DNA of 63,947 nt, counting the filler, from Octopus bimaculoides (lineage: Eukaryota), in NCBI RefSeq assembly GCF_001194135.2. It is 9 parts of 7 records of this genome, joined end to end, with 100 filler letters (N's around TTAATTAATTAA, not from the genome) between each part and the next. Parts side by side here need not be neighbours in the genome. Positions count along the whole stretch, not along the records: positions 1 to 25,320 come from NC_069009.1; 8 more parts are not named here. One strand, written 5' to 3'. The notes below the pieces were generated by a model. That model did not search any database. It was not told the DNA's origin and saw only the letters and a program-made list of their open reading frames with translations. The position numbers and the translations under genes were made by a program. Positions 1,182 to 24,815 of this stretch are shown piece by piece (the first letter of the stretch is position 1; each line of letters opens with the position of its first letter).

Positions 1182-1253
1182 GGATTTGAGTGGTAATGAT
1201 ATCAAGAGTATCAAAGGAGAAACATTCCAAAATATTTACAGTTTAACAACTCT
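1182..1253 (+). CDS. LRR exon 1 in window (72 nt, phase 2-2) of an LRR-LRRCT-Ly6/uPAR-SEA-like extracellular protein
   Basis: Acceptor ttattttacag and donor gtaagt. Translates (L)DLSGNDIKSIKGETFQNIYSLTT(L), one 24-aa typical-class LRR. Confidence 0.93.
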
Positions 1254-1438
1254 GTAAGTTGAATCAGTCTTATTTTATATTATTTCATTAACGATATATT
1301 TCTAAATATGTAATGTCTACCCATACTTCATTTCAATCTCTCTCACTTAACGTTACCTCTCTTATGAATCTCTATCCAAAATGTGTGTTGTTGAGAGTGT
1401 ATCAATATGACAATAGAAGGAGAAAATGTAGTGCATGC

Positions 1439-1508
<70 letters not shown>

Positions 1509-1519
1509 CGAGAGAGAGA

Positions 1520-2100
1520 GAGCCTTCCCCAAACGCATCCCCTTTCTCCTCATTTTCCACCTCTCCTCCCCACTCAACCCGTCAGAAGGTCCTGTAGGCC
1601 TTCCACCCTCTCTATTTCCCCAAACCACCCTTGTCCTCCTTCAAACGCACCCGTAACTTACGCGATCTATTGCTGCGTACCCTCCACCTCCATTCCAACC
1701 CAACCCGGATCATTCCCTTGCTCCAAACCCCGTTGCCGCACCTGTCCTTTCATCATCAACACCACCTCCCTCACTGGATTCAACCAGTACACACTCTACC
1801 TTAAGAACTCTCTGCAATAAAGTTTTCATTGGCTAGGCTGGCCGCTCGCTAGCCGATCGGTTCGCCGATCACCAACGAAATGTTCGTCTACGTAAGAACA
1901 CCCCCGTCGCCCATCATTTCCTCTTGGCGAGCCACTCCACCTCAAATCTCACCATCTTCGGCTTTACCCTACAACATGGATCCACCAGCTCTACACTCTA
2001 ACTTGAACAGCGTTATATTTTCACTCTACATACTCAAACTCTTTTCGGACTCAACATAACACTCTCCTCAGAGATTTTCCCCACTACCGCTTAAAAACAA
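1520..2100 (+). mobile_element. Penelope-like element fragment (linker plus GIY-YIG endonuclease), decayed
   Basis: Translation across stops and frameshifts gives FKRTRNLRDLL, PRCRTCPFI and LCNKVFIG*AGRSLADRFADH...PVAHHF...LEQRYIFTLHTQTLFGLN. Confidence 0.85.
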
Positions 2101-2775
2101 ACAAAAATATTTTTTTCCATCCTTATATTTTATTCGTTATTTTTTATTTTCACATTGTTTATGTATAAATTCGTGTGTTGAAGCCTATTTTATTGTGTCT
2201 GGGAAGAGTTATTCTCTTTCAGTACCTTATTAATTTAACACACCCACTCGTTTATTTTTTACTGAAATTTTCGTTGCGTCTTGCAACCTTTTCAATGGTC
2301 GTTGACTCTGTCCGTTAGCAGAACAGCATTCTTTTTGTGTGCATGTATGATGCATGTGCGTGTGTGCATATATATGCATGCATATGTGCACGGTTGTATG
2401 TATGTACTCTGCATATATGTGTCTGCATTATGGGTGGTGTGTGTATACACGTTTCAGTGTGTCTCTGTATGGGTTTGCGTGTCTATGTATGTGCGCCTGT
2501 TATGTATGGCTGTGTCTCCATAGGTGTCCTTGTGTGAAGTGCTTGTGTGTATATATGCTCATGTGTTTCAGTCTTCGTATGTGCATATGTGTGTGTGTCG
2601 TCTGTCCGTATTTTCTATGTACCTACCTATCTCTATACCTGCCTGTCCATTTACGTATCCACTTACCTATNNNNNNNNNNNNNNNNNNNNNNNNNNNNNN
2701 NNNNNNNNNNNNNNNNNNNNNNNNNNNNNNNNNNNNNNNNNNNNNNNNNNNNNNNNNNNNNNNNNNNNNNNNNNN

Positions 2776-2806
<31 letters not shown>

Positions 2807-2899
2807 TACATGTACACACACATATATTTATATTTATATACATACAGACACAGACACCCACACACACGCCTACATAACGACCTAGTAACAACACTATCC

Positions 2900-3560
2900 G
2901 TGCATATATAAACACTGAGTATTGGAGTATGACACCTATGTATATGTCCTATTTAGTACTGGGGATGTTTCTTTCATGAAGACGTACTTGTACTTGTCTG
3001 AGTGTTGGGTCGTTAGGGTGCTTGGATAAAATGTAGATGTCAAGTTGGCCCAGTGTACCTCCATGATGGTAGAGTATGGAAAATAGTTTTTGTCATCATA
3101 TTGTTTCAAATGTCCATTTTGTCTCTCGATGTTTCGCCTATGTATGTTATGTTCTCGTCTTTGCAAGCATCGTCTATGCACCATGTGCTGTAGACTACAT
3201 TTCTAGTTCTGCAGTTAATGTAATACATACCATACAGTTATCACTGGTGCATGTAGCATTCTCAAGGGGGGGGTGCATGTAGCATTCTCAAGGGGGGGTG
3301 CATCCTACATAGTTGTGATCTGATAGATCTCCTTGACTTTTCAGTGATCTTAATGTTGAGTTTAGCCTCCTACAGTTCTTTCCTAAATCTACGAGCTAGT
3401 TCTCCATGGGCTGTGGCCTTTACAAACATCAGTCCGTGATATTTGTCGGTCTGGTACCACATGTTCAGAATGTTTGGTTTGCTACAATCTCTTTGTATCC
3501 TATTCCAGTTTTTACATCTACATCTAGGGTAAGTTTCATTACTTACAATGCTGTCTAACT
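2900..3560 (-). mobile_element. Penelope-like element fragment (GIY-YIG), decayed
   Basis: The minus strand gives CRTRNVVYSTWCIDDACKDENITYIGETS, with upstream LMFVKATAHGELARRFRKEL. Confidence 0.8.
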
Positions 3561-3814
3561 TTCTCTAGCACCCGTGTATACTCGAACATCATAAATTTAT
3601 GGCCATCAACACTACCATCATATTTTCATCTCCTCCATTTCATAATCATATACACCACCACCACCACCACTACCATTATCTCCATCATCGTCATCCAGTT
3701 CATCATCTAAATCTACTCTGCATCTCTTCCATAATCTAATTGTTTAGACATGACCGTTAATATTCTTTCACAAATCTGATCCATACAAGTTCTTAACTAA
3801 ATTTTATTTTACAG

Positions 3815-3886
3815 AGATTTGGGTGGTAATGATATGAAGGAAATCAACGCAGAACTCTTCCAATATCTTTCCAGCTTAAAAACTCT
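3815..3886 (+). CDS. LRR exon 2 (72 nt, phase 2-2)
   Basis: Acceptor ttattttacag and donor gtaagt. Translates DLGGNDMKEINAELFQYLSSLKT(L). Confidence 0.93.
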
Positions 3887-4124
3887 GTAAGTTGATTAAT
3901 TAATTTGTATTGTATTTTATTGAAGTTATATTTCTAAATATGTAGTGATGCCCATATTTCATTTTAAACTCCCTCGCCATCTCTTCCCTACACTATCACT
4001 CTCCCTCTGTCTTTTCAATGTGTGTCACTAATTGTGAATGATATAAATAATATGAGTGTGGACCCATCCCTAAGAGTTGGTATATATGACGGTGTGTTAC
4101 TTTAGGTAAAGTATGGTTTTATCA

Positions 4125-6159
4125 AAAGACATTCAAATCATACATAGAAATTCCTACCAACAACTATTTCCATACACAGCTTAAATTTCAGAAATGAAAT
4201 TCCATATATGAAACCAGTGAATTGTGGTTATCCCCAGGGGGAATTTCTAAAGGATATTTAAGAACGTGTAGGCTAACCTACGACAAACTCAGAAGTGTGG
4301 GTTTTATCTTAAGCGTTCCGTAGTAACCGTCATTGCCATATATATACAAAAACAAATACGTTCTACACATCTGTATACGTCCCGGTATGATACACAATAG
4401 TTCAGTAATGGTATTATGATAGTTAAGATATAAACATTATCGAGAGGAAAAGAATAGTAGATAAACTTAGTGAATGGGGGAGAATGTTATGCATTTATTG
4501 TTAAGTCGAGAGCAGCTAGACATGACAATTCATCGAGTATATGCCTGTCGATAAGACTACAAATTAATGAAATATATCATATCAAACTCCACCCAACTCA
4601 ATCTAAAATTGCTACATTAATCAATGTTTACGCAAATACACTATTTATACATATCAAGTAAATATACACAGAAATCACATATTGTTGAGTTACCCTCAGA
4701 AAATACAAACAGACACATGCAGAATCACACACATATACATATATATATGTATATATTTTGTCTTATACATATATATATATATATACACATACATATACAT
4801 ACACACACACACACACATACATATGTATATATATATATATATATNNNNNNNNNNNNNNNNNNNNNNNNNNNNNNNNNNNNNNNNNNNNNNNNNNNNNNNN
4901 NNNNNNNNNNNNNNNNNNNNNNNNNNNNNNNNNNNNNNNNNNNNNNNNNNNNNNNNNNNNNNNNNNNNNNNNNNNNNNNNNNNNNNNNNNNNNNNNNNNN
5001 NNNNNNNNNNNNNATATATTGGAAAATAATAACAAGAAATAGGAATAGGAATAAATCGAAATACATTGAATTTAAGAATATTAAAAAGCAATATCAAAAA
5101 CAGGATATGCGAATTGTGGGAAACAATATACTGCTGAGGTCTTCTAATATTTCTAATAAGGTCAGGAATAGGAGTAAAATGATTAGAAAGTATACACCTC
5201 ATATATCCAATAATGGTCGTAAGTGCGGAGGTTATAATGAATCTTCCGATGAAGACGAAGCTGTGTGGTTTATTGTTCCGATCGTTAAGCAGATTAAGGG
5301 TAATGTCGTTGGTGCGTTATGGAAAGTATTTTCGAAATATTTCACAAAAGAGAATGGATACTATGATATTATTAACTCTAGCAGTTTTAGATTCGGTCAT
5401 TCTATATCTAGTCATTTGTACCAGATTATATCATCTATTAACGAGAGAAAATTATATTATTCTTATAATAATTGTAACGGTAGTAAACGCCGTTCTGTTA
5501 ATAGCTGTATAAATAACGTAAGAGAATAGAGTGAAGGTAGGACATCTGATGTACGAAAGGAAGCTATCCTAGTGAAATCTCATCCCAACCTTTTGAATGT
5601 ATGTAAAACGACAAACAATACAAATCTAAATAGTAAAGCTGGGAAAAATATATAATAATGTCGAGGTTACAAATAATACTTTTTGTGATTGCAGGGTTAA
5701 AAGCAAATGTTTGTTTAAGAATTAGTGTAAACGAAAACATGTTGCTTACAAGTATAGTGTATATTCTGAAGGTAGAAAGTACGTTTATATTGGTGCTACG
5801 CAAAATGTTATTCAAAAACGTACTTGTAATCATATTTACACCTTTAATAATAAAATAGGTCCGCCCCCACTAGCCTTAGTAAATTTATTTGGGATATAAG
5901 CGATGCCAAAATAGCTTTTAGGTAGAGTGGTAAATTATAAGCCGCTGGTTATAAACCTGGAAAGTCTCTCTGCTTTCTTTGTTTAGAAGAACTGTATTTG
6001 ATTTTTATTTTGAGATGTCTACGAAACGCAAAGATGGAAATGGGACTTTCTTGTGTCCATACATCAAAATGGATATTTAGGAACTTTTATTTATAATTGC
6101 TTATATTAAAGATATTAACATTTAAATAATATATATGTGTATCTGTGAGTGTGTGTGTG

Positions 6160-6198
<39 letters not shown>

Positions 6199-6790
6199 TT
6201 TCTGTAGGTAAATCTAATATGTGGGCTCTGTTTGTATTTACTTGATACGTATAGACCGTGCGTTTGCGTAAACATTGATTAATTTAGCAATTTTGGATTG
6301 GGTTGGGAGGAGTTTGATCTGATATATTTCGTTAATCTGAATTATTATCGACAGGCATATGCTCCACGAATTGTTGTGTCTCGCTGCTCTCTTCTTAACA
6401 ATTAATCTATAACGTTATCCATTCACTAGTTTTATCTAGTATTCTTTTTCTCTTGATATTGTTTATATCTTAACTATCATAGCACCATCAATGAACTATT
6501 GTGTATCATATTGGCTCGTGTAAGGATATGTAGAACGTTTTGTTTTTGAATATACGACGCAATGATGGTTTCTACGGAACACTTGCGTTAAGAAAAAACA
6601 AACACTTCTGAGTTTGTCGTCGGTTAGCCTACTCTTTGTTAAATTTCCTTTAGAAATATTCCTTAAGGATATACACAATGAACTGGTCTGATTTCGTACA
6701 TGGAATGTTATTTCTGAAATTTAAGAATTGTGTATAGACACAGCTGTTGGTAAGAATGTCTGTGTATAATCTGAATGATTTTAGATAAAA
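4125..6790 (+). mobile_element. Penelope-like element: inverted copy of the 3' region, then RT C-terminus/GIY-YIG and 3' region
   Basis: From 5684: CDCRVKSKCLFKN*CKRKHVAYKYSVYSEGRKYVYIGATQNVIQKRTCNH, then TSLSKFIW and CFLCLEE. About 4125-4790 is a diverged reverse complement of about 6110-6790 (perfect 21-mer at 4616-4636 and 6263-6283). Confidence 0.82.
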
Positions 6791-6998
6791 ACAAATCAGC
6801 TGTATGTAAATTTTCCCCCTTTTCTTCATTTTCTAATGTTCATTTAAATACCTATACTTTTCGGTGATAAACATATATACTTGGTTTTCTCTTAACGCTG
6901 GTATAAACCGCTGCACTAGGATACTCGCACCGAGGGATTTTAGTTCCTAGACTTATTAAACACACACACACACACATTATATATAGATTAATAATTAA

Positions 6999-7447
6999 GG
7001 GTACTACAGGCAGTTCCGGCATTCTGAGACAGCAGTCGAAATGACCCAAATCACAAGTTTTCACTTAAGCACAAAAGTGAAGGCAGGCAAATGAACAAAA
7101 TCCCTAAGACTCCGAACCAATAATAAAAATAATCGAAAAGTGAAAAGCTCAGACACACCCGTATTGCCGTGATTTCGAACTTTTAAAATTTGCAGCAGCA
7201 TAAGAAACGTTCATGGCAAACATTTGTTGGGATGAACAAGTTCAGAGTCAGTAAGACGCGCTGAGTATGGGGTATTTTCTCAAAGTTCGAAATTACGGTG
7301 ATAAGGATATGTCTAACTTTTTCAGTATTTGATTATGTTCGGGGTCTTAGGGATTTTGTTCATTTGCCCACCTTGTGCTTAAGTGAAAACTTGTGGTTTG
7401 GTTATTTCTGACTGCTATTTTAGCATGCTGGTACTGCCTTACTACCC
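6999..7447. mobile_element. MITE with long inverted arms and TTAA on both sides (Kolobok-like)
   Basis: TTAA|GGGTACTACAGGCAG ... CTGCCTTACTACCC|TTAA, with arms complementary over about 180 bp. GG...CC ends plus a TTAA target fit Kolobok rather than piggyBac (CC...GG). Confidence 0.75.
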
Positions 7448-7681: not shown

Positions 7682-7753
7682 ATATCTGCATAACAATAGC
7701 ATTACATATATTCAACGTGGTATCTTCGAAAGCCTTCCAAATTTAGAAAGCTT
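7682..7753 (+). CDS. LRR exon 3 (72 nt, phase 2-2)
   Basis: Acceptor ttatgttacag and donor gtgagt. Translates YLHNNSITYIQRGIFESLPNLES(L). Confidence 0.93.
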
Positions 7754-9265
7754 GTGAGTTCGGTCACTTTTGTTCGTACTATTTATTTCTCCATACATCT
7801 TCTCCAGTTTCACTGTCTCTGTTGGCCTCTCTCTAACATCCTTACTCTCACTCTCTCTTTCCATTGTTTTCTCTGAGTGTATCCATGTGAACATGATGAT
7901 CTTCTTTCTCACTTTCTTCTCATACATATCCATGTTCTTGTTATCGTGTTAATCGTAATATTTTTTCATTTATCATTCATGCTCTTTGTTTTCTAAACAT
8001 TCGTTTACCTAATATTCAAACACACATTATTCAACTCCATTTCCTAGTTTATTTTCTGTTTGTTTTCTTCTTTGTTCTATTTTTAAATTTTATCACATAA
8101 TGTTCTTCATACATTTCTTTTTCGTTTTGTTCTTCCTTTTCAACTTCATTTTCAGCAGATTCTATTTTTGTCCTTCTTTATATTCTTTTCTTCTTTTTCT
8201 TCTTTTTCTCCTCATTTGCTTCTTCTTCTTCTTCTTCTTCTTCTTCTTCTTCTTCTTCTTCTTCTTCTTCTTCTTCTTCTTCTTCTTCTTCTTCTTCTTC
8301 TTCTTCTTCTTCTTCTTCTTCTTCTTCTTCGTCTCCTCTTATTTATTTTCATTCCTTTTCCTTATTTCTTTCTTTTCACTTCTTTTAATTCTACTCGATA
8401 TTTTACTTCTGTTTCCTTATCCTCATTCTCTTCTTCATGTTCCACTCATCTTTCTTTATGAGTTTCTTTCAGATTTCATCGCACTTCATCCGCTTTTACT
8501 TTCGCATTTCTGTTCCCCATCATCTGTTGTTGCTGTTCTTTATCCGTGTTCTCTTTTTCTCTTCTTCCTTAACTTCGTTCTCCTTCTACTCTACACCGCT
8601 GTGCCCCTCGGTATCTTTTTCGTTTTCTTTTTGTTCTCCTCCTCTTCCTTCACCAGTTTCTTCCAAATATTAAATACTTTTTCCTTCGTCATCTCAAATT
8701 TCTTTCACATCATGTTTTCCTGTTTTTTTTAAATATTTTCTATCGACAGACTTATCGTATTCATCACCATCATCGACATTACCATCATCACAATTTTCTG
8801 CACCAACTCTCACACACTTAATTTTATCGTCATCAACATAATCATTATGATCCTCAGCAGAAACAGCATCAACTTCAAGTCGTCATCAACATCAGCATCA
8901 ACATTATAAATGTCTTCATCATTATCGTTATCAAAAACTTCATCACCATCATTAGTAACAACCGTGTCTTTATCAATACTAGCACCATCCTTGTCGCCAG
9001 CCTCTTCCTCACATTCACACCACCGACACCTCCAACAGTATACACCTCCACTTCATCATCAATACACTTATCAAGCTCATGCTCATCCCCTTATCGTCTC
9101 CTCCATCAAATAATTGTCTCACCATAATGTTTTACCTTTTATCATAACACATTTCTAGACATTTTCTAATCTAAAAGTTTATTTTATAGACATTTCGGTC
9201 ATAATAATATTTTACAATAAAACTCCTCTCTATCTTATCTTATCAACTAATATTTTATGTTACAG

Positions 9266-9337
9266 ATATTTGTATGAAAATAATATCGAGAAGATCCAAG
9301 TAGGAACCTTCGATAATCTACCCAGTTTAATATATCT
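9266..9337 (+). CDS. LRR exon 4 (72 nt, phase 2-2)
   Basis: Acceptor ttatgttacag and donor gtaagt. Translates YLYENNIEKIQVGTFDNLPSLIY(L). Confidence 0.93.
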
Positions 9338-9526: not shown

Positions 9527-9575
<49 letters not shown>

Positions 9576-9579
9576 ATAT

Positions 9580-9635
<56 letters not shown>

Positions 9636-10139
9636 GTATATATATATCTGTATATCTGGGCAATTGTGTATGAGTAAATGTATGAGAGGGTAACGACTTA
9701 TGTTTGTATTTCTATCTGTATATCTTTTACTGTGTTTATCTCTAGACCAACGCTGATTACCATCCATGACTCTCCCTTGTAATTGCATATTTAAGATTAT
9801 ATTGTTATTATTAAATGTTTCTACACCTTACAACTTTTATTGATTTTCTTCTTCTTCTTCTTCTTCTTTTTTTCTTCTTCTTCTTCTTCTTCTTCTTCTT
9901 CTTCTTCTTCTTCTTCTTCTTCTACTACTTCTCCTTCTTCTTCTTCTTCTTCTTCTTCTTCTTCTTCTTCTTCTTCTTCTTCTTCTTCTTCTTCTTCTTC
10001 TTCTTCTTTTTTTTCTTCTTCTTCTTCTTCTTCTTCTTTCCTAATTAATTCGCCTGATAAATTTTACGGATATATTTCCATATCTTGCATCTCTCCCCAA
10101 GCTTCTCACTAAATCACATTCATTCTCTCGCCATGTGTA

Positions 10140-11250
10140 TGTATGTCCACCATAGTATCCGAAGAAATACCAGAGAACTAAGATTGCAAGAACTTATGAA
10201 TGTACTCCATGACAGACAGTACCCAACTCAACTCACAAATCAAGGAACTAAACGTGCAAAATCGATTGATATTAAAACATTAAAAAAGCCAAATACAACA
10301 CATATACCCACAAAGCAGCACTTGGTTATATCTCCACATACAACACCAGGAACAAAGAAACATTCAATATCATCATCCAAAATACTCCAATACTCTATAA
10401 AGACCCCAGACTTAAGGAACTCCTACGTAACCATAAATTCATCAAGAGCTGCAAACAGCCTAAGATATTGAAGAAAATTTTCATTAGTGCCAAGTTCTCT
10501 AGAACAACAAACGCAAGTGTCGTAAAGTGTGGTCACCCTAATTTCGGAACATGTCTCAATATGTTGGAACGATCGGAATTCCATTTCAGACAAGGGCAAA
10601 TATTCAAAATGAAATCTAATATCACTTGCGCCTCCCAAAACCTCATTTACGTAATCAGATGCTCGGGCTGCCTGCGAAACCCTATTGGCTCGACGGGAAA
10701 TTCGATGTGAAAGAGATGTACGGTCCATAGACAACAAATTTCCTCCCCACAATATCGCCAAATATCCCTCAGTCAACACATTGAAGCATTTTCAGAATTA
10801 TTACAACCACAATTCGTAATTTTCCCATTCTATCAACTTGCCTTCTGGACCTCAACACAAGTAAGATTGACTAAAGGAACGACATTTATCCAAAAATATA
10901 CACCAAAATTAAATACGAAACCCATATTAAAAAAAGGACTTACCCCATCTAATGGGAATAAAATAGAAAACACAGAAAAAAATTAAAATTAGATTTACCT
11001 TCCCTTTACTGCAAAATGAATGACTGAACAATTATCTCCCCTTTTTCAACTCTCAGCTTGAGGAGCAATGCGAAACCGGTCCTTACTTCAATTAAGTTGA
11101 AAGAACAAAACCTCATTTTGTACAAAATTGTATAATATCTTTATTATCATGGCTCTAATATACTATTATATGTTGTGAAACAAATCTGTGTGTCTTTTCA
11201 TTTTTTCTCTTTGTATATGTATCCACCGCATGTGTTCCACACTAAAGTAT
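10140..11250 (+). mobile_element. Penelope-like element fragment (RT thumb, GIY-YIG, 3' region)
   Basis: KSNITCASQNLIYVIRCSGCLRNPIGSTGNSM*KRCTVHRQQI...SLSQHIE...FIQKYTPKLN. Confidence 0.87.
11041..11103 (+). ncRNA. Degenerate minimal hammerhead-ribozyme-like motif in the Penelope 3' region
   Basis: C(T)TGAGGA-GCAATGC-GAAA-CCGG-TC, closed by tttcaact/agttgaaa pairing. The core has one deviation and proximal stem I is poor. Confidence 0.45.
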
Positions 11251-13190: not shown

Positions 13191-13262
13191 AGATTTGAGC
13201 AAGAACCGAATAAAAACCTATGAGGATGGCGTTTTCTTATTCCTGCCCAGTATAACTTTTAT
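13191..13262 (+). CDS. LRR exon 5 (72 nt, phase 2-2)
   Basis: Acceptor tttcttccag and donor gtatgt. Translates DLSKNRIKTYEDGVFLFLPSITF(I). Confidence 0.92.
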
Positions 13263-14889
13263 GTATGTACAACACATATTTGTTTATCGGAAAACGAAAT
13301 GTCTTCGTAAACACACAGAATGATGTCGACAAACTAAAATCATAAACAGATGTCATAAAATTCAAAATTATTTAAGACAATTGATAAGAAATAGCAATAT
13401 GTCGGATTTAAATTTAGTGGTTGGCGGGTTAGTAACTATAGTGAAAGAGAATTACCCAAAGCCCCAGGCATTCGGAACAAATTTAAAATAACCGCTGCTA
13501 ATTTCTTAACCACACAGCTTTGTCCGTCACAAATGTAATCTTGCTTACGTAGAACCAACGCCCCCAATTCGTATTCTGATAGGAAGTTTTATATGTACAT
13601 ACTTTTAACTGGTTTCCTATGAGGAACGTGGAATTGTGTCGCAAAATGGACCTAAAAACAATTTGCTTTTATAGAAAGAGTGTGTCTAAAATCTCTATCA
13701 ATTAACGTACAGATTGATTCGTTGAGGATGGTCACGTGGTGTGGTAAGAGTATCTTTGAGCAGTTATCTCTTATGGCCATGTATTAAAAGCTTGTGACAT
13801 TCACGTCCAGGAGTCACGTCAAAGGTTTAGTCCAGTAGATTTGTCAGTTAACAGCCAGAACAATAACCATGAATGCGCCCAAATTTAGAGCTGTCTTAGC
13901 CTGATGCTTGTAACAAGCAGCTGTGTGAGAATGCAGCTATTGTCATATTTATCCAAGGCGTAATGACTGCTTGGTGCAGCTTTAATGAATGATTCAATCC
14001 TTCGTTCCATCTTCCAAATGTGATCAAAAGAGTCGAAAATATACATTACTCTTAAACTGTCTGGAGATTATAACGAATTCGAATCGTTTGTAAAACTCAG
14101 TGTAAAGCATGAATTATTTACGCACGTAAAAGTCACGTCAAACTTTTAATCCGGTAGAGATGTCATATGGCAGTCAGTAGCTATGAAAGATAAAAGCCAC
14201 ATCTGAATCTAGGTCTGTTTCAACTTTTGGTTGTCTCCAGTAGCTGTGTGAGCAGCTGTTATCTTATTTCACCAATGCGTGTTGACATTGTTTGTGTTAC
14301 ACAAACTCTTTTAGTGAATGATTTAGTCTCCCTCACCAAACGCGATGAAATAGGTGAAAAAGTAATGTAACTTTTAAACAGAGTTAGAAATTGCTGAAAA
14401 CTATCAGGTGAATAAAATAGTTCCGTCTTAACAGACAGGTGGTAAGTTGATCTAGTCGTATGTCAACACTATCTTCTTTCAAACGGGTTATAAAAATGTA
14501 AAACAGAAAAATTTAATCCATAATTATATACATAAACAAAAATACAATAAAAATTAATGTAAAAGTTAATACAAAGGAAATTCCACATATATAAAATTTT
14601 AAAAAAATCTTGTTCTTGTAAAAAAAAAGTGTAACTGAAAATAAATTTTTAATCTTCACAGTCTTGTTCTTAGACTGAAGTAGATGGGTTTTTTTTTTAG
14701 GAACATGGTGAGCTTTGTTTGGTTTTACGATTATTTTACGGTAACAACGCACAGCATCTTGAATGATATGTTTATTTTTTGTGGTCGTAAGTGGGGATGG
14801 TCGTAAGTCGAGGTGAAGGTGTATTTAGTTCTTAAAGTTTTACAATATCTATTTAAACATCTAGTATTTATATATTAAATATAAATATA

Positions 14890-15400
14890 GTATGTCATCA
14901 ACATTTTGTATATCATCTATATTTTGTATATCACCTATGTCTAGTATTTCATCCATAGTAAATATATCATCTTCGTCATGCATATCATCTACGTCTAGTA
15001 TGCCCTCTGTATATCGTATGCCATCTACATTTTGAATATCATCTATATTTTGTATTTCACCTGTACCTAGTATATCATCTATAGTAAATATATAATCTAG
15101 TATGCTATCTACATCATGCATGTCATCTACCTCTAGTATACTGTCAGTATATCGTATGTTATCTACATTTTATATCTTTTCTATATCCACCACGTCATCC
15201 TTACTATATATGTCATCTATATACAGTATGCATTTATAATCAGTATGTCATCAATATCCACCATGCCATCTATATCATGTATATCATCTATATTCAATAT
15301 GTTATCTATATCGTATATCCCACCCTTATCCAGCATATCATCAATATATCGTATGTCATCTATATTTCATATGTCCTCTATATCTCTGCATATCAACTCT
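14890..15400. repeat. Degenerate 18-bp minisatellite with about 126-bp higher-order structure
   Basis: Recurrent atcatctatattttgtat-like units. The long unit recurs near 14897 and 15021. Confidence 0.8.
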
Positions 15401-15679
15401 TTCGAATATGTCAGCTATCTACTCGATACAGTTTATATCACATCTGTCTTTATTAGTTTCCAAGCTATATCATCTAAAGAAGTAGGATCTTAACTTATTT
15501 TCGGCTTCCATGAGAAACCATTTCACTTTATTGCAATTCTTAACATCTTTTGGAACAAAACATGAATGTCATTACTTCTATACTCTTGCTGGAATTATAG
15601 CATCCTTCTTTCTTACCAAATACATCAGGGGCTTCTCTATACCTCTAAAGTACATTCACTGTTCTGTTTATAATTGCAG

Positions 15680-15849
15680 CGACCTCAGAAACAATACAGA
15701 TATGATGTGTGGATGTCATCTGCCAGCCTTGGTGAATTATACGAACTCAAAGTTCGGCAGAGTTGTGGATGTCCAGGGCGAGTGTCAGACAAATTCAGCC
15801 AATAACCAGATCCAAGTAATACCAATAATGGAATACTCGCAATGTCAAA
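15680..15849 (+). CDS. Last LRR plus LRR C-terminal cap exon (170 nt, phase 2-1)
   Basis: Acceptor taattgcag and donor gttagt. Translates DLRNNTDMMCGCHLPALVNYTNSKFGRVVDVQGECQTNSANNQIQVIPIMEYSQCQ, with the 4-Cys CxC...C...C LRRCT pattern. In phase with exon 5. Confidence 0.88.
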
Positions 15850-16224
15850 GTTAGTAAATTCTTCTTTGTTTTTGTTATTTTATTATTAGAACAAACAACG
15901 TCGGGGAGTTAGCACAATCGTTGGCATGCCGGACAAAATGCTCAGCAATATTTCGTGCAACTGTAGACTGGTCCGCTAATATTGTTAGACCAGGAGCCTT
16001 CACCGTAAGCGCAGGTAAAGCAGCAGTGGAGTTACTTTTTAAAGTTACGGATAAATTTTTGTTGTTACAACTCTTCCATGAACCAACCAGAAATAACTAT
16101 TAAAAGTGAAACTAAACAAAGCTGAAACTCTTATATCACATTACAATAGAGATGTTATTGCTTCACCTTTGACACGTAACACAGAAACAGTCTAGGAGAT
16201 TGATCTAGGCTCACATTAGAGACC

Positions 16225-16685
16225 TTATTGATTATACACATGATGAGACCCGTAGTAATATAATAGCTTCCTACATGTGAGCACGGGATAAAAATCTAAT
16301 TTCCGTTGTTTACATCGTTGTCCGGGTGATGAGATATTCTAACTCGACCCTATTCTCGGCTAAACATAATCAGCATTTTCTGCTCCTATTAAAACAAGGC
16401 TCACAAGTCTCCAGGTTTTTTCAGTACTCTGTAATGCATTTCTTTAACAGTCACATATGCCTAGCCCGGACTGTGACATTGCGATTCTCTAGGATACTTA
16501 AGAAAGAGTTATAGTTATTATATCCAGTCTAGAAAGGACTTTCATATCGCCTCCTTTGACATCGTTTCCTCCTTTTTTTCTCAGCATTTCCGATTCTGAG
16601 TTGACATTTTCACCCGCATTAACAGAGATCAGTATTTTGTTTTCCATACCTGTCTGATATGAAGAACACGTAGTGTTACTTAGAA
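16225..16685. repeat. Direct repeat A (second copy at about 18270-18700)
   Basis: Shared colinear blocks such as attgattatacacat, gtagtaatataat, gctaaacataatc and caagtctccagg. Confidence 0.85.
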
Positions 16686-16998
16686 TTATTTCCCTTTATT
16701 TGAGTTATTGCACAATTTTCGCCCTTATTTTGAGAGCAGAATACAAATAGAAAATGCCATCAATTAGCTTTCGTAGCTTTCTTAGTTTAGTTTGTGACAA
16801 AACTGAAACAATTGCAAGTGGATATCGTAACATACTCTTGTAGTTTTCATTAATTATTTTCTTTAAATGCCTCACATGTATTGATTCCAGCATTAACACT
16901 TTTACATTTGCTTTACACCACAATGTGATTATTTTCTCTTATTCCTATACATTACTTATTTGGTTCCTAAATATGGATATTTTTCTTGTATTGTATAG

Positions 16999-17090
16999 AT
17001 TACTCGTTATTTCAACGGAATTTGCAGTGTCAAACATGCTCAGGGATTTTGTGCAATGAAGGAGAAGTGACGAACTGTACAGGCGATGAG
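16999..17090 (+). CDS. Ly6/uPAR-like domain, first exon (92 nt, phase 1-0)
   Basis: Acceptor ttttcttgtattgtatag and donor gtaagc. Translates (N)YSLFQRNLQCQTCSGILCNEGEVTNCTGDE, containing the LxCxxC start of a three-finger domain. Confidence 0.88.
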
Positions 17091-17117
17091 GTAAGCTGAA
17101 ATGTTACTTTCTTCCTT

Positions 17118-18065
17118 TTGATATACACTTAAACCACACTTAAAGCCAGTATGGCTACGTAACTTCTACCAAGATTTCACAAATTGTTTTAGATGCCCAT
17201 GTAATCATAAGTCGATACAAACATCTTCTCGGTCTTCTAATCCTTGACTCAGCAGAACAAGGAGTAGACATTTGAAATGAGAGATGGTTGACCAGCATTA
17301 AGCCGGTATTCATTTTCAGCTGAACTGACTGGAGCAACGTAAAATGAAGTGCTGCTTTGTTCAAGAACACAAGATGTCATTCGGTTCAGGAATCGAAGCC
17401 ACGATCCCATGTGTGTCATATTCCCTTTTCCTTCACCGACAAAAATAACTGCACTTAATATTCCGCTATCGTAGAATTTTTGTTTGAATGATGGCTATGT
17501 TATCCGGCAAATCACTGAATTTCAAAGTCTGGGCAGTCGTCCTGGACATCAGTGGTACCAAATGCTCCACAGTGATGTTCTGAAAGGAACACATTCGTAC
17601 AATGAAGGTGGTGTTCCTAGGTTAGTAGTTGCATGACACCACTGTGTCAAGGGGGCTGAATTTCCCCTGACATCAGAAAGGCTTCCTGCGGAACCCTCGA
17701 TCTCAACTTGGTGAATTAGGAACTTCGCTTTATAAACAAGGTGGGATTGTGTGAGAGTAAAGCAAAGAACGGTCGATAAAGAACATTAAAATCCTGCTTA
17801 AAATTACGTGCGGTCTGTAGGTTTCCGACTGGATTTTTCCTGATGTAACTCTACACACAGGGAGCATCCAGGATTGGTCATTTCGATCGTATCTTAAAAG
17901 AATGTGTTAGGCCAGCAGATGAGTATAGTACAAAATATCTTTAGTTGAAAGTGATTAGCTACACAGATCATATATTTTATTTTATTTGGTTGGTAAACTT
18001 AAATTGGAACCATTGTCAGGGACCCAGTTCCTGGAAGTTGGACGTGTCTCTACGAACTTGCAAAC
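17118..18065. repeat. Intronic duplicated block B (second copy at 22673 to about 23690)
   Basis: Both copies start ttgatatacacttaaa.cacacttaaagccagtatggctacgtaactt and stay colinear through a SINE remnant and a LINE RT remnant. Confidence 0.9.
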
Positions 18066-19149
18066 ATTACAGGAATTAGACTAATGAATTTGTGAGGCAA
18101 TAGTTGAGAGGAATTATTATTCACAACCAGTGGCAGTGCGTCCTTAAAGGGACGAAGAGGACGATTAACTTCGAGAGCGTTTAGCGAAGTGCTACTAACA
18201 GGCTCCTAGCATATATGTGAAGCGAATGGTCTATAAAATTTTACGAATGATATATAAAGCGTTAGAGAAACTATTGATTATACACATGGCGAGGCCCGTA
18301 GTAATATAATATATAACTTCTGTCATGTAAGCATGGGATAAAAATCTAATCTCCCTGCTTACATCGTTGTCCGGCTTCTGAGAATATTCTGACTCGATCC
18401 TATTCTTGGCTAAACATAATCTGCATTTTCTGCAGCAATTAAAACAATGCTTGCAAGTCTCCAGGCTTTTTCAGTTAAAGTACTCTGTAACGCATTTCTG
18501 TAACAGTCACATATGCCTAGCATTGACTCTGACATTGCGATCCCCTAGGATACTTAAGAAAGAGTTATAGCTATTCTATCTGGTCTCTTTGTTTTCCTCA
18601 GCCTCCCCGAACCTGATGTGACATTTTCAGCCTCATTAACAGAGAACAATATTTTGTTTTCCATACCTGCTTGAACTGAAGAACACATGGTGTTACTTAA
18701 CCACACTGTTATCCAATATCCGATTACACTTTGAAACACGAGTTTTGTCCTTGATTAGCAACTGTCATTTCCTTACACCTAAAAAGTATGAAACGTGACT
18801 AATATTTCCTTCAAAATTTTGCTTTTGTTACATTTATTCACACCCCAAAGAATCCTTCTCAACACATAGCTATCATACTCTCCACTACCCCTGTTGCGTT
18901 CAAAGATAATCACATTGTCAGCCAAGTGGTTAAGTTCAAGCAACTTGTAAGCAAATTTGGGGCATTGAAAAGAATATTTGCTATAGTGATATTTGTGCTT
19001 CAACAACTCAGCGATGAATCTGTCTGAAATGTAATAGGAAGTAGGTCAGTGTGAAAACATTGATATCCAGGTCACATAAGTAATTTGTTCGGGACAGACA
19101 ATGGGTCGGAGACGGTAGTGGTCTGCGGTACTTACATTGATGAACTATC

Positions 19150-19760
19150 GGCAGTTGTGAGGTGTAGCGAGAAGCCGATTACAGCATTTGAAATATTGAG
19201 AGCAATGAACTCTCGCACAAGGCGCAAATAGTTCGGTTTGTATGGTCTGCCTTCTGAGTTTTAGTAATACATGCCAGACGAAATCATCCTGCAGGTATTC
19301 GTTCAATGTCCGGGCATTGCTGATTTGTGGAGTTATGATAAACAACGTCTGTCTGACGGGGGACGGTTCTGGCTATCAAACGAGTACATCATGATGAATG
19401 CTCCGCTGCCAACCTTTATCAGAGTAGGGAAAGTAGTTTTCCTCTGTGCGGCGACTATAACGAATGGGGTTGTGTTGAAGATGTTGAAATTTATAAGGAC
19501 TAAGATATTCCCCTCTGGTCGAGGCCTCATCGCCCTCTTCAAGTTTCAAATGAGAAATTAATTGTGTGGGGAGAGGGAGGTGCTGTCCCCAAGTGAATTT
19601 ATTGAAAGGTTGGTGAAAGCGTTTAAGGACACAAGAACGAATGTATAGACCTGTGTAACGGAGTACAGTAATTGGAGAGGGCAATTGCCCTTAATGTTCA
19701 AGGTGAGGTTGAATGGTGGGGTTCTTTGATTGGTTCTAGAGGTCCACCTCTATTACGAGG
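19150..19760 (-). mobile_element. Decayed non-LTR retrotransposon 3' ORF fragment
   Basis: The minus-strand translation has LINE C-terminal-like segments (RKTTFPTLIKVGSG resembles TLAQLRSG, followed by a Cys/His region). The clade is uncertain. Confidence 0.5.
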
Positions 19761-20209
19761 ATCACATAGCTACTACCTTTAAACTCGTATACCATTCGCT
19801 TTTATATTGTATACCATGCATGCTTATTTCTATATATTTATAATTCCATTCCACTGGCAAAATACAAGAACAATTATTATAATCATTATTATTGGGTTAT
19901 AGATCGAAAGTTACAAGGAAGAATTACTCTATGATTTTTTGAAGTTTATAAATTCTTATGAGGTTAGAAACAAAATTTTCGCTGATCAGAAATAAGTTTT
20001 CTATAACGGGTAGAGAGAGATTCGAAGGATTGCTTTGGTTCGGAGGTAGAACACCGGTCATGTTTACAGGGGGTCTGGATTAGAATTCCACGGGCAACCT
20101 CCTACATCTTTTTACCCAAAGGGTTTTCTAAACCAATATTTACACGCTATCATTTATAGCTTGCCTACTTCAAGATCCAACGTCTCAATAAAGAATTATC
20201 CTTTCCTAG

Positions 20210-20412
20210 TCTAGGTACAAGGCCCGAAATTTTTGTTGAGGAGAGCAGTCGATTAGATCGACTCCAGTATGCAACTGGTACTTAATTTATCGACCCCTAA
20301 AGGATGAAAGGTAAAGTCGACCTCGGCGGAATTTGAACTCAGAACGTAAAGACAGACGAAATACTGCTAAGCATTCCGCCCGGAGTGCTAACGTTTCTGC
20401 CAGCTCGCTGCC
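20210..20412 (-). mobile_element. tRNA-headed SINE, family 1 (GGCGAGCTGGCAGAA...)
   Basis: A- and B-box-like head (GTTCAAATTCC) and GTCGAC/GGGTCGAT body. Other copies: about 34893-35085(+), 35100-35340(+), 45871-46103(+), 54900-55060(+), 55082-55295(+), 55330-55530(-), 26690-26790(-). Confidence 0.85.
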
Positions 20413-21126
20413 TTTCAAGATAGAATTATTAACAAGATTGTTGGTCTTCAGTGATTCGTCTGGATCTTGGATATTTTCTCTCCAAATTTTATGCGAATAT
20501 AGTGTATATTCATTTTATTGCAATAGAATATGCATGTCGATGAGAAACATATACTATACCTTTTGTATCCATTTATGCATTTTCTGTTTTATTTGCAAAA
20601 CCTGAGTGTTTAAGTCCAGTCCTTTATTTCATTATCCTCATTTACGACAGTTACCGTTGCGCTTGTTTCTGTTGTTGCTGAGGTTCACACGTAAGATATT
20701 TCGTACACTTAATTTCTATGACGAATTCACACTGCAGTACTCAACAAGTTTCGATTAAATAAGGTTTCCAATAGAATTTATGGGGTTTTTTTCTACCCTT
20801 GTAAATGGGTGGCAGATCGGTGTGGTGTTCATATTCAACGTGTTTTGATATATAACACATAATTTACAAGCGATAAATATCAGTAAAGCTCAAAGAACCT
20901 TACTTATGCAGTTGTCTTTCAACATTTTATCGGTTTGTATCGATCTAATTCGTTGCTTTTCGATATTTTTTTGAGTAAGGATTCATTCAACTTCCTCGTA
21001 TACTGAATATTCCCCGTTGTCGTTGCTTGTAGTAGCAGCAACAGTAGTAGTAGTAGTCGTAGTAGTAGTAGCAGCAGCAGTAACAGAGGTGGTAGTCGTA
21101 TATGATTTTTGTATTTATTGCAACAG

Positions 21127-21310
21127 CCTGTATGTGAAAATAAGATAACGACGAATGGCGTTACACTGAAGTTTGAAAAATCCTGCAGCACATACAGAAA
21201 TTGTCTTGTAGCTCTGAGAAGCAATACATTTAAATGCAATAAATGGACCAGTGGCGTGTCTTGTGTCAGTTGTTGCACAGGAAACTTGTGTAAGAGGAAC
21301 GATTCCATTG
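21127..21310 (+). CDS. Ly6/uPAR-like domain, second exon (184 nt, phase 0-1)
   Basis: Acceptor tttattgcaacag and donor gtaagt. Translates PVCENKITTNGVTLKFEKSCSTYRNCLVALRSNTFKCNKWTSGVSCVSCCTGNLCKRNDSI(G), ending in a CCxxxxC motif. Confidence 0.9.
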
Positions 21311-22101
21311 GTAAGTTGTGTTTATTTTCTTATATAATTTCACTTCATTTATTAGACATGAAAGTTTAATAAGAAAATTGTATAATAGTTAATATATTAA
21401 AAAGTATAATCGCCGTACTGAATTTACAAAATTTATCGCGTTGACATCAGAGGTGCGCACATCACTTGGCCATTCCCAGATAAACAGATAACGCAGCTGT
21501 TTATATAAACAAATATTCTTGTAACTTCAGACACCCGGAGCCATTAATTTGTATACATATTACTATATAACACTATATATAAAATCAGCACCCTGTCAGC
21601 AGGTATGCCAGTCCACAATATATATATACACACACACGTACAAACACGAGTATGCACAGACACACATAAACACACGAACATATAACATATATATATATAT
21701 ATATATATATACATACATATATATATATATANNNNNNNNNNNNNNNNNNNNNNNNNNNNNNNNNNNNNNNNNNNNNNNNNNNNNNNNNNNNNNNNNNNNN
21801 NNNNNNNNNNNNNNNNNNNNNNNNNNNNNNNNNNNNNNNNNNNNNNNNNNNNNNNNNNNNNNNNNNNNNNNNNNNNNNNNNNNNNNNNNNNNNNNNNNNN
21901 NNNNNNNNNNNNNNNNNNNNNNNNNNNNNNNNNNNNNNNNNNNNNNNNNNNNNNNNNNNNNNNNNNNNNNNNNNNNNNNNNNNNNNNNNNNNNNNNNNNN
22001 NNNNNNNNNNNNNNNNNNNNNNNNNNNNNNNNNNNNNNNNNNNNNNNNNNNNNNNNNNNNNNNNNNNNNNNNNNNNNNNNNNNNNNNNNNNNNNNNNNNN
22101 N

Positions 22102-22134
<33 letters not shown>

Positions 22135-24079
22135 GTATATGTACATGTATATATACACATAAGCTAATTCGAACACGCGTTGTTAGTTCAGGGGACGGCT
22201 GCGTTCGAAGTTTAAGAGAATATATTCTTAATGCGCTTGATGTTAAAAACATCTAAAAGTAAATCAAAGGTGAGGCGTCTCACATCAGGTCCTTTTTCTG
22301 AGCGACAGACATCGATGTATGGTCATTGATATGACGTTTCAATGTCACGTACCGAACAAGACCTGCTGCAAGATATATCGCCGACTATGACTACATGTTA
22401 AATGACTTAAACTCTAATCCATAATTGAATTTTTTTCTGTGGTGTGAAATGTTGTGAAATGCGAATAGGATTTTAAACTTCATATTAAAAATATAAAATG
22501 GCGACAAATTACCTATCGTACACTGTACATATTTTGGACTCACAGTAAGTCTGAGAAAAACCAAGGTAATGTNNNNNNNNNNNNNNNNNNNNNNNNNNNN
22601 NNNNNNNNNNNNNNNNNNNNNNNNNNNNNNNNNNNNNNNNNNNNNNNNNNNNNNNNNNNNNNNNNNNNNNNNTTGATATACACTTAAACTACACTTAAAG
22701 CCAGTATGGCTACGTAACTTGTTTTAGAAATCCATGTAACTTGTTTTAGAAATCCATGTAACTATAAGTAGATACAGGCACCTTCTTGGTCTTTCAATCC
22801 TTGACTCAGCAGAACAAGGATTAGACATTTGAAGTAAGAGAGGGGTGACCAGCATTAGGCTGGTATTCATTTTCAGCTGAGCTGACTGGAGCAACGTAAA
22901 ATGAAGTGCTGCTTTGTTCAAGAACACAAGGTGCCATTCGGATCAAGAACCGATCCCACGATCTCATGTATGACCTCTTCCCTTTTCCTTCCCCGATAAA
23001 AATAAGTGCACTTAAAGTGAGATGTGTGAATATACGTGTCTTGGAGTCAGCTTGGAAACAAGGTCCGTTGTTCAACGACCTACGAGTTATGAGATATTCC
23101 TGTATCTTAGAAGTTTCGTTTGAACGATGTTATCCAGCTATGTCATCCGCAAGTCACTGAATTTCAAAGTCTGGCCAGTCGCTCTGGAGATCAGTGGTAC
23201 TAGATGCTCCACAGTGGTGTTCTGAAAGCAACACATTCGTACAGTTTAGTAGTTGTGTGGCACCACTTTGTGAAGGAGGCTCGATTTCCCATGACATCAG
23301 AAAGGTTTCCTAGGGAACTTTCGATCTCAACTAGGTGTATTAGGAACTGTGTTTAATAAACAAGGTGGGATTGTGTTAAAGTAATTCAAAGAAGGGGCTA
23401 CAAATAACATCGAAACCCTGCTTAATAGTTCCAGCGGTCTATATGTTTCCGACTGGATTTTCCTGATGTAAATGTGCAGACACGGAGCATCGACGCATTG
23501 TCATCTTGATCGTATCTTAAAAGAGTGTTAGGCCAGAAGATGAGGATAGTGTAGGATATCCTTAGTTTAAAGTGGTCAGCTACACAGACCACATTTTTTT
23601 TTACACGGTAAACTTAAATTTGACCCATAAGCAAGAACCCAGTTCCTGGACGTTGGACGTACCTCCACGAACTTGCAAACAATACAGGGATTAGATTAAT
23701 GAAAGTTAGTGATAGCGATTGAAGTCGCAAGAGCGAATGGCACTTCTCTAAAAGTATAGACCTGTGTGACGGACTACAGTAATTGGAGAGGGTACTTGCC
23801 CTTGGTGTTCAGAATGAGGTTAGATGGCTGGGTTCTTCGATTGNNNNNNNNNNNNNNNNNNNNNNNNNNNNNNNNNNNNNNNNNNNNNNNNNNNNNNNNN
23901 NNNNNNNNNNNNNNNNNNNNNNNNNNNNNNNNNNNNNNNNNNNATCTTGTTTGTTGTTAACACAACGTTTCGGCTGATATATCCTCCAGCCTTGGGGAAA
24001 TTTTTTTGAACCTGGGTTCTCATTCCTAACGATGTTACTATCATTATTATTATTATAATTATTATTATTATTATTATTA

Positions 24080-24158
24080 ATCAGGTGGCTACCGTGAATC
24101 GAACTCGTAATCTTGGGGTTAGTAGCCCGCGCTCTAAACCGCTACGCCATATGCCCGT
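24080..24158 (-). mobile_element. tRNA-derived SINE head
   Basis: The minus strand reads ggcgtagcggtttagagcgcgggctactaaccccaagattacgagttcgattc. It has A and B boxes but no complete cloverleaf. Confidence 0.6.
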
Positions 24159-24314
24159 CGGCATATACATAAATAAAACTTTCTATACAACTCACAACAG
24201 TGTTATTATAGAGATATTTATGTTTATATGTTTATTTTAACACTCAGTATAGCTCTACCCTGTGTCTCATTTATATGTATAATGATTCTCTTCTATTTAT
24301 GCATCTTTTTATAG

Positions 24315-24409
24315 GCTGGACGAATTCCTTTCTATTTCATCTGATTTACAATTCGACATTTAAGAATATCATAAAAGATATAAAAACTGCTGAAAACGTA
24401 TCTAGAGCT
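24315..24409 (+). CDS. Following extracellular exon, SEA-like N-terminal part (95 nt, phase 1-0)
   Basis: Acceptor tctttttatag and donor gtgagt. Translates (G)WTNSFLFHLIYNSTFKNIIKDIKTAENVSRA. The phase matches the previous exon. The SEA assignment rests on the hydrophobic pattern only. Confidence 0.78.
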
Positions 24410-24762
24410 GTGAGTAGCTATGTAATCTTTGACTCTCATAATCTGTTTAACTGACTCTCATAATCTGTTTAACTCTCTCTCTCCCTTTCTCTCTTCTCTT
24501 CACATAGATACACACACATATACCTATACACACACACAGACACAGACACATACACATATATATCTTTATTCTTATGCTTGTAAGTAGGATAACAAATTGC
24601 ATACGACATATTCTGATTAATTCTTCTAGTATACATGAACAATTTTCATACCCGGGCAACGCCAGGTGCCTCTGCTAGCAATAAATTAATCTGTACTCTT
24701 ACTTCATTATAGAGTCCTCTTTTTTCATTTCCGTAACAATAATGTATATATAACTATTGCAG

Positions 24763-24815
24763 ATGGAGTATGAATTATCAAACTTGACAGGAGTGTTTGA
24801 AGTTGAATATTGTGG
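24763..24815 (+). CDS. Next exon, SEA-like continuation (53 nt, phase 0-2)
   Basis: Acceptor actattgcag and donor gtaagc. Translates MEYELSNLTGVFEVEYC(G), in frame with the previous exon. Confidence 0.72.

Follow-up and report, generated by a model that had tools for sequence, protein, structure and literature searches.

The first piece of the analysed window (a stretch of 63,947 nt joined from nine parts of the Octopus bimaculoides genome, of which positions 1-25320 come from NC_069009.1) contains ten plus-strand exons that join into one stop-free frame. With a probability of about 80%, we read them as internal exons for the ectodomain of an adhesion G-protein-coupled receptor (aGPCR) of an octopod, whose gene is cut by both edges of the piece. 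They encode five leucine-rich repeats (LRRs) with their C-terminal cap, a three-finger (LU) domain and the first half of a SEA-like domain. Members of the corresponding family have an ectodomain consisting of signal peptide, LRRNT, 24-residue LRRs in varying number, cap, LU, SEA-like, HormR and GAIN/GPS domains, followed by a family-B seven-transmembrane (7TM) domain. The gene of the window is therefore expected to begin upstream with a signal peptide and LRRNT, perhaps with further LRRs, and to run on downstream through the rest of the SEA-like domain, HormR, GAIN/GPS and 7TM.

Ten exons and their spliced frame

The piece is AT-rich eukaryotic DNA (35% G+C) with five runs of N, and a bacterial-style list of open reading frames (ORFs) contains only low-complexity or repeat-derived frames. 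The exons were found by a six-frame scan for the second half of the LRR motif, which gave five plus-strand matches, each within a 72-nt segment directly preceded by ...TTTTACAG and directly followed by GTAAGT, GTGAGT or GTATGT. Together with five further segments these make ten exons, all bounded by AG and GT, with AG and a pyrimidine-rich tract upstream of each and with GTAAGT, GTGAGT, GTATGT, GTTAGT or GTAAGC as donors. The phases run 2-2 five times, then 2-1, 1-0, 0-1, 1-0 and 0-2. The splice product (1182-24815) has 317 amino acids and no stop, reproducing the ten GT-AG exons, coordinates, phases and open frame that an initial annotation of this DNA had proposed.

A search of 5.8 billion proteins gave the 382-residue Octopus sinensis protein P0001, which is 67% identical to the splice product over 100% of its length (E=4.9e-138), followed by about 25 further Octopus proteins (26 matches in all). 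At the nucleotide level the exons were compared with the O. sinensis loci L001 (VCDQ01001849.1) and L002 (CM016866.1) and with L003, a paralogous locus of O. bimaculoides. The exons are as follows.

1182-1253, plus strand: LRR exon 1, not the first exon of the gene (72 nt, phase 2-2, AG/GTAAGT)
3815-3886, plus strand: LRR exon 2 (72 nt, phase 2-2; P0001 residues 41-66, 77% identity)
7682-7753, plus strand: LRR exon 3 (72 nt, phase 2-2; P0001 residues 64-87, 75% identity)
9266-9337, plus strand: LRR exon 4 (72 nt, phase 2-2; colinear with L003)
13191-13262, plus strand: LRR exon 5, the final repeat preceding the cap (72 nt, phase 2-2)
15680-15849, plus strand: LRR C-terminal cap exon with four cysteines, CxC...C...C (phase 2-1; tblastn E=9e-23)
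16999-17090, plus strand: first exon of the LU domain, cysteines 1-4 (phase 1-0; kept in L001, L002 and L003)
21127-21310, plus strand: second exon of the LU domain, cysteines 5-12, with CCTGNLCK at its end (phase 0-1)
24315-24409, plus strand: first exon of the SEA-like domain, strand 1 and helix 1 (phase 1-0; aligns to L003 6971-7206)
24763-24815, plus strand: second exon of the SEA-like domain, strand 2, with VEYCG at its end (phase 0-2; 83% identity to P0001)

When the Octopus proteins were searched against the window with tblastn, all ten exons were recovered independently and in order, colinear with P0001 residues 17-332 and with no residue missing. When both strands of the window were searched with a set of 166 family or related proteins, only these ten exons were matched, plus one spurious hit. 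For individual exons the significance reaches E=1e-23 to 1e-35. LRR exon 1 matches P0001 residues 17-39 and has an LRR_8 match on the splice product, LRR exon 5 is matched by 22 family proteins and is colinear with L003, the cap exon is kept in L002 and L003, and the second LU exon is 83% identical to the O. sinensis protein P0129 (E=1.5e-35). The residues across the joins agree with the family consensus (SQCQ/NYSLFQ, GDE/PVC, IG/WTNSF and SRA/MEYEL), and all structural cysteines of cap and LU domain (16/16) are present, as are the family-invariant residues. For every exon, identity to database proteins by tblastn is 83% at most. The frame of exon 10 is open (phase 2) at 24815 and runs beyond the piece, and tblastn finds no additional family exon in 24816-25320.

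Two further candidates were dropped. All eight N-glycosylation sequons listed by the initial annotation are present and the product contains nine N-x-S/T sites in total, but shuffled sequences of the same composition have 5.5 +/- 2.0 (p about 0.07), so the claim that they are many does not stand clearly above composition and sequon enrichment was not used as evidence. A second gene on the minus strand was likewise rejected, as the minus-strand ORFs have no family or Pfam support. No tRNA and no Rfam family was found in the window.

Domain assignments and full-length relatives

Pfam LRR_8 matches the splice product in four stretches (E=8.6e-49), and the product has five 24-residue repeats of the LxxLxLxxNxI type, one per exon. 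For structural comparison P0001 was used in place of the window product; its AlphaFold (AF2) model has a predicted local distance difference test score (pLDDT) above 90 over LRRs and cap, and in Foldseek this part aligns over more than 200 columns with the Nogo receptor, LRRTM2, Slit2 D2, variable lymphocyte receptors and LGR4. The CxC...C...C pattern of the cap is present and kept across the family, although Pfam LRRCT gives no match at E<=10.

Since all LRR exons have 72 nt and phase 2-2, duplication or skipping of any of them leaves the frame intact, and this symmetry accounts both for the widely varying number of LRRs (about 2 to 12 per paralogue) and for a near-identical pair within the window. 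Between exons 1 and 2 the identity is 83% and takes in approximately 23 nt of the upstream intron (1159-1262 versus 3792-3895), and the likeness extends about 100 nt into the downstream intron, which indicates a recent tandem exon duplication. An acceptor context, TTTTATGTTACAG, is common to exons 3 and 4.

The LU domain has 12 cysteines in the arrangement C-x2-C-x4-C-x7-C-x6-C-x16-C-x5-C-x10-C-x8-C-x2-CC-x4-C, of which 10/12 are invariant across the molluscan relatives; it ends CCTGNLCK in the window, with CN at that place in the relatives. Searched alone against 177,635 PDB sequences, it matches only LYPD1 (E=0.0024) and LYPD6. A profile built from the molluscan relatives (A7) matches human LYPD1/Lynx2 over its full length (E=2.5e-7, 12/12 cysteines aligned), then LYPD6 (4.7e-4), candoxin, SLURP-1, ACVR1, TGF-beta receptor 1 and CD59, and nothing in PDB outside the three-finger superfamily. 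Sub-threshold Pfam matches of the relatives' LU domains, namely Toxin_TOLIP (7/14 members), Activin_recp (best 6.6e-4), UPAR_LY6 (0.015), UPAR_LY6_2 and CD59, all belong to the uPAR/Ly6/toxin group, and NCBI names the closest LU relative, P0129, 'ly6/PLAUR domain-containing protein 1-like'. The domain is thus assigned to the LU group by sequence, with its fold unconfirmed. In the full-length AF2 model of P0001 the LU part has low confidence; in a domain-only model it reaches pLDDT 60-83, with a central hairpin, a finger-3 helix and a C-terminal strand. Both outer boundaries of the exon pair are in phase 1 (start of exon 7, end of exon 8). This phase 1-1 symmetry, which LU genes typically show (PMC6600238), agrees with insertion of the domain through exon shuffling.

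With strand 1, helix 1 and strand 2, exons 9 and 10 cover the first half of the SEA-like domain, which in P0001 (residues 285-380) has the predicted topology beta-alpha-beta-beta-alpha-beta. Pfam SEA is found in 3/13 relatives (best 1.1e-6) and gives no match for the 48-residue fragment of the window or for P0001; in the Haliotis protein P0144 it reaches 5.5e-5 and 23.7 bits against a cutoff of 26.4. The family profile searched against PDB has the SEA domain of ADGRF1 as its top match (E=0.04), with that of MUC16 at 0.46, and Foldseek returns generic ferredoxin-like folds only. The G/SVVV autoproteolysis motif between strands 2 and 3 is absent in the relatives examined, in which VEYCG leads into polar inserts, for instance YDDRE or SNRNK; the window sequence ends in VEYC(G). 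This cleavage motif is not obligatory in SEA domains, and we regard 'SEA-like' as a fair label. A second partial SEA-like segment (WTKSFAFRLILKSFNEYKKPAENISRAMEHEF...) follows HormR in P0007, P0008, P0010, P0012, P0020 and P0121; it is either a real repeated module or an annotation fusion of neighbouring tandem paralogues.

The identity of the family as aGPCRs comes from its long members. Word-indexed searches with the LU profile and with a combined LU+SEA profile yielded nothing beyond octopus proteins and a single whelk protein, with no other phylum represented. When 1.84 billion representative proteins were scanned exhaustively with the LU+SEA profile (HMMER), just 41 proteins were matched, and the long ones among them come from O. 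bimaculoides, Argonauta, a transcriptome, Nucella, Haliotis and Dreissena. According to Pfam, P0125, P0130, P0133, P0142 (Nucella), P0144 (Haliotis) and P0146 (Dreissena) combine LRR_8, GPS and 7tm_2. Some long relatives also match HRM, GAIN or SEA, and P0125 has a Death domain. GPS was found in all long relatives scanned (8/8), the Argonauta protein P0135 ('adhesion GPCR G6-like') being a partial sequence that was left out of the scan. The LU+SEA profile matches P0125, P0130 and P0133 with E values of 1e-30 to 1e-65, and the cleavage and tethered-agonist sequence HLTNFALLMD occurs in P0130, P0142, P0144 and P0146.

Among solved structures, 7TM and GAIN of P0130 are closest to ADGRG6 (E=1.5e-67), then to ADGRG2 and ADGRG4, with no ADGRA structure among the matches. 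Precomputed Pfam matches on the relatives include GAIN_ADGRA3, and database names of the relatives range over 'adhesion GPCR G6-like', 'adhesion GPCR A3', 'SLIT and NTRK-like 4' and 'ly6/PLAUR domain-containing protein 1-like'. Given the GAIN_ADGRA3 matches and the NCBI name 'adhesion GPCR A3', the subfamily is not settled. The initial annotation had deduced the order LRR, C-terminal cap, LU and SEA-like from the DNA, and the family profiles bear this order out. The search for the same architecture across molluscs shows that octopods, gastropods and bivalves share it and that it continues to HormR, GAIN/GPS and 7TM.

The same continuation is seen in genomic DNA. L001 and L002 align with window positions 13520-22489, introns included, at 73-85% nucleotide identity, and both have HormR and GAIN exons further along the same strand; the next called gene carries GPS and 7tm_2 in L001, and in L002 only a weak GAIN_ADGRA3 match before the end of the locus. 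L003 follows the window colinearly, at 70-81% identity, from LRR exons 4 and 5 through the cap exon and the two LU exons to SEA exon 9, beyond which it has HormR and GAIN exons. A further O. bimaculoides locus, L004 (CM046630.1), has three successive models, one with LRRs, one with LU and SEA and one with GAIN, GPS and 7tm_2, which are clearly one receptor gene split by annotation. The GAIN-region exons appear twice in L001 (15952-16791 and 18174-19026, separated by 2.2 kb, their products 79-100% identical to P0026), either through tandem duplication or through an assembly artefact at a gene-model boundary.

Assembly continuity and alternative readings

All five gaps of the piece are intronic and none adjoins an exon; gaps 1-3 lie within (TA)n microsatellites. 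L002, where window position 21702 corresponds to 17934 and 22177 to 17947, runs across gap 3 (21732-22101), as does L001, so the flanks of this gap are continuous and hide no exon. Gaps 1 (2671-2775) and 2 (4845-5013) are unbridged by the loci compared; P0001 shows no missing residue there, and an additional 72-nt, phase 2-2 LRR exon could be hidden in them with the frame unaffected. The remaining two gaps enclose one further feature.

22673-23843, plus strand: 1171-nt non-coding contig in intron 8, between the 100-N gaps 22573-22672 and 23844-23943

Comparison through families D7, D8, D11, D12, D15 and D16 identifies this contig as a diverged duplicate of intron 7, 82-87% identical to 17110-18223 and 19640-19732; the duplicated sequence starts 20 nt past exon 7. 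The contig also matches intron 7 of L001 and L002. It could be a misplaced paralogue contig, or a local duplication with a copy of exon 7 inside gap 4; such a copy, if spliced between exons 8 and 9, would break the frame. With two 100-N gaps around an intron-7-like contig, exons 9-10 are connected to exon 8 by scaffolding.

This leaves room for a chimeric scaffold, with exons 1-8 from one paralogue and 23944-25320, the contig 22673-23843 or both from another, which among the alternatives survives best and which we nevertheless consider rather unlikely. Beyond the two gaps around the diverged intron-7 copy, it would explain why the best-matching protein changes from exon to exon, and it agrees with the O. 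sinensis loci, which have no SEA exons at this place and in which nothing matches 23944-25320 (against L001, a low-stringency blastn of this segment gives microsatellite matches only). Yet order, orientation and phases of the exons fit the family, and L003 supports the order of exons 8 and 9 on gap-free sequence, with the second LU exon and SEA exon 9 only 2.2 kb apart and with likeness in the flanking intron as well (window 24182-24437 aligns to L003 6971-7206).

We think it still less probable that the exons encode a stand-alone secreted or membrane-anchored LRR-LU-SEA protein, whether as a separate gene or as a soluble or decoy isoform lacking the 7TM domain. Several NCBI models do end after SEA or LU (P0001 with 382, P0003 with 525, P0025 with 211 and P0129 with 151 amino acids), the scallop protein P0141 is a 285-residue LU+SEA protein and the Babylonia protein P0149 a 114-residue protein with a single LU domain. 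However, many of the short models have no signal peptide or begin in the middle of a domain, and in L001, L002 and L004 they directly precede same-strand HormR/GAIN models, which in L001 and L004 also carry GPS and 7tm_2, so that short and downstream models look like pieces of one receptor gene. The open frame of exon 10 must also continue past 24815.

A partial duplicate or decaying pseudogene copy, with intact ectodomain exons in a non-functional gene, is very improbable: the family is recently expanded and tandemly clustered with loss of modules (no SEA exons in L001 or L002), the introns are full of repeats and the locus may be unannotated, given that no database protein exceeds 83% identity to any exon, but all ten exons are open with canonical splice sites and have kept the 16/16 cap and LU cysteines and the family-invariant residues.

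Several observations weigh against reading the ten exons as part of an aGPCR gene with this ectodomain. The 7TM, GPS and HormR exons lie outside the piece, membership of the receptor family being drawn from homology and colinearity. The short relatives with LRR, LU and SEA only may be secreted isoforms or truncated duplicates and not annotation fragments. On the splice product, Pfam at E<=10 returns LRR families only, with no LRRCT, UPAR_LY6 or SEA, and for this reason the domain calls were made via family profiles. Foldseek with the LU+SEA model against PDB gives weak generic ferredoxin-like matches and no three-finger match. Exons 9-10 are joined to exon 8 across three gaps and the suspect 1.2-kb contig. 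Finally, in L001 (8426-12659) and L002 (17541-22688) the second LU exon is followed directly by HormR with no SEA exons, and over the 10 kb that precede the cap neither locus shows an LRR exon. From these two loci it follows that family members lose modules, and modules have evidently been gained or lost between close paralogues or orthologues.

The introns themselves hold a number of repeats. Plus-strand polypyrimidine tracts of the CT/CTT type (132-900, 8100-8460 and 9815-10050) give rise to poly-Leu, poly-Ser and poly-Phe pseudo-ORFs, and the whole piece is skewed on the plus strand (T 8719 versus A 7125; C 4784 versus G 3860). Intron 5 contains, 300 nt upstream of the cap exon, a minisatellite (14867-15380) with an 18-nt unit in at least 18 copies that are 60-88% alike. 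An inverted repeat pair in intron 2 (4208-4683 versus 6216-6692, 81-84%) and a direct repeat pair in introns 6 and 7 (16334-16682 versus 18384-18699, 83-89%) are presumably fragments of transposable elements; neither pair gave a tRNA, Rfam or Pfam match. Plus-strand frames at about 1700-2000 and about 10560-10720 have Cys-x-Cys followed by ...IYVIRCSGC...IG.TG... or ...VFIG.AGRSLADRF..H, which resembles the GIY-YIG module of Penelope-like retroelements, a likeness that is unconfirmed and has no Pfam match. Pfam likewise matches none of the remaining intronic ORFs, on either strand.

Known receptors and meaning for octopus biology

An octopus-specific expansion of aGPCRs, termed 'group 3', has been described (Ritschard et al. 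2019, PMC6408891). Nearly all of its members have GPS and 7TM, 5/22 have LRRs and a single member carries a Death domain; its co-localised genes show expression in axial nerve cord, suckers and skin (PMC6408891). With an LRR N-terminus, GPS and family-B 7TM, group 3 is homologous to the window product, and it is likewise tandemly clustered and recently duplicated. It includes the O. bimaculoides proteins XP_014788728 ('GPR126-like', P0125) and XP_014773211 ('adhesion GPCR A3', in the P0133 cluster), and P0125 carries a Death domain like the one member in that study. The published description lists only LRR, GPS, 7TM and Death and does not mention the LU and SEA-like domains of the family in the window (PMC6408891), and the copy in the window is not identical to any database protein (at most 83% per exon). 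The fragment is therefore a new member of an already published receptor family and not a new kind of system, for which the initial annotation had taken it as the best candidate; some 40 relatives are in public databases, and the LRR aGPCR expansion of octopus was published in 2019. The remark of the initial annotation that an LRR solenoid and an LU domain are not known to be joined directly in any characterised family still holds in the literature searched.

Other known proteins share parts of this architecture. ADGRG6 (GPR126) has the same membrane-proximal order of SEA, HormR, GAIN/GPS and 7TM, and many members of the family carry the NCBI name 'G6-like'; its N-terminus consists of CUB and pentraxin domains, whereas the molluscan family has LRRNT, LRRs, cap and LU instead, and Pfam found no CUB or pentraxin in the full-length relatives scanned, which have LRRs in that position. 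ADGRA2 and ADGRA3 (GPR124 and GPR125) have LRRs and cap, a small module, then HormR, GAIN and 7TM. Their small module after the cap is an immunoglobulin (Ig) domain, where the molluscan family has LU and SEA-like domains, and no Ig domain was found between LRR cap and HormR in the relatives scanned, some of which match GAIN_ADGRA3. LYPD1/Lynx2 has the same 12-cysteine pattern, cysteine for cysteine, ending in CCxxxLCN, and is encoded on a phase 1-1 exon set (PMC6600238); it is a small glycosylphosphatidylinositol (GPI)-anchored protein, unlike the molluscan LU domain, which is an internal module between LRR cap and SEA.

The combination of LU domain and aGPCR has a precedent in starfish, where LyAr2/LyAp2 carry an LU domain at the N-terminus of predicted aGPCRs that groups with Lynx2/LYPD6 (PMC9410279, PMC11595613), and the molluscan LRR-LU-SEA arrangement is undescribed in the literature searched. 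Both are invertebrate aGPCR ectodomains with an LU domain of Lynx2/LYPD6 type, a likeness drawn by description; LyAr2/LyAp2 gave no match at E<=1e-3 in the LU+SEA scan of the 1.84 billion representatives. Tentatively, and with slightly less than even odds in our estimate, the architecture LRRNT-LRR-cap-LU-SEA-HormR-GAIN-7TM would define a distinct, undescribed aGPCR subfamily that is found throughout the Mollusca (cephalopods, gastropods and bivalves) and was massively duplicated in octopus, and this molluscan family is possibly related to the LU-bearing receptors of starfish. If true, LU would be a mobile module spread by exon shuffling, contrary to the view of a 2019 review, in which LU domains occur in secreted, GPI-anchored and TGF-beta-receptor contexts and LU is at most a 'proto-module'. 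The family also provides a clear case of LU as an internal module of a multidomain receptor, which is rare according to LU reviews.

If the ten exons belong to such a receptor, the concave face of the LRR solenoid, perhaps together with the fingers of the LU domain, would, by analogy with characterised aGPCRs, engage a partner protein of the matrix or of another cell. The GAIN domain would cleave itself at HL/T, and force or ligand acting on the N-terminal fragment could then expose the tethered agonist TNFALLMD to activate the 7TM domain and G proteins. The initial annotation had proposed a surface or secreted recognition protein with immune, chemosensory or neuronal wiring functions; a surface protein in neuronal or chemosensory biology fits the expression of the family (PMC6408891), and a self-contained LRR+LU+SEA protein it probably is not.

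On a practical level, public annotation evidently splits these octopus loci into two or three models per receptor gene, with unrelated names such as SLITRK4-like, slit-like, decorin-like, LRRC15-like, LYPD1-like, ADGRG6-like and ADGRA3. Counts and domain inventories of the octopus aGPCR expansion drawn from split gene models are therefore unreliable.

Lynx2 is a known modulator of nicotinic receptors. As a bolder extension of the subfamily reading, given an LU domain of Lynx2 type and expression of the family in both suckers and axial nerve cord, the LU module could, by analogy, couple aGPCR signalling with the nicotinic-receptor-like chemotactile receptors found in octopus arms. Furthermore, the use of one symmetric 72-nt exon per LRR offers a simple route to changed ligand-binding surfaces in a family that is expressed in suckers and in the nervous system of the arm, and this exon design bears on how octopuses came by their repertoire for peripheral sensing and wiring.

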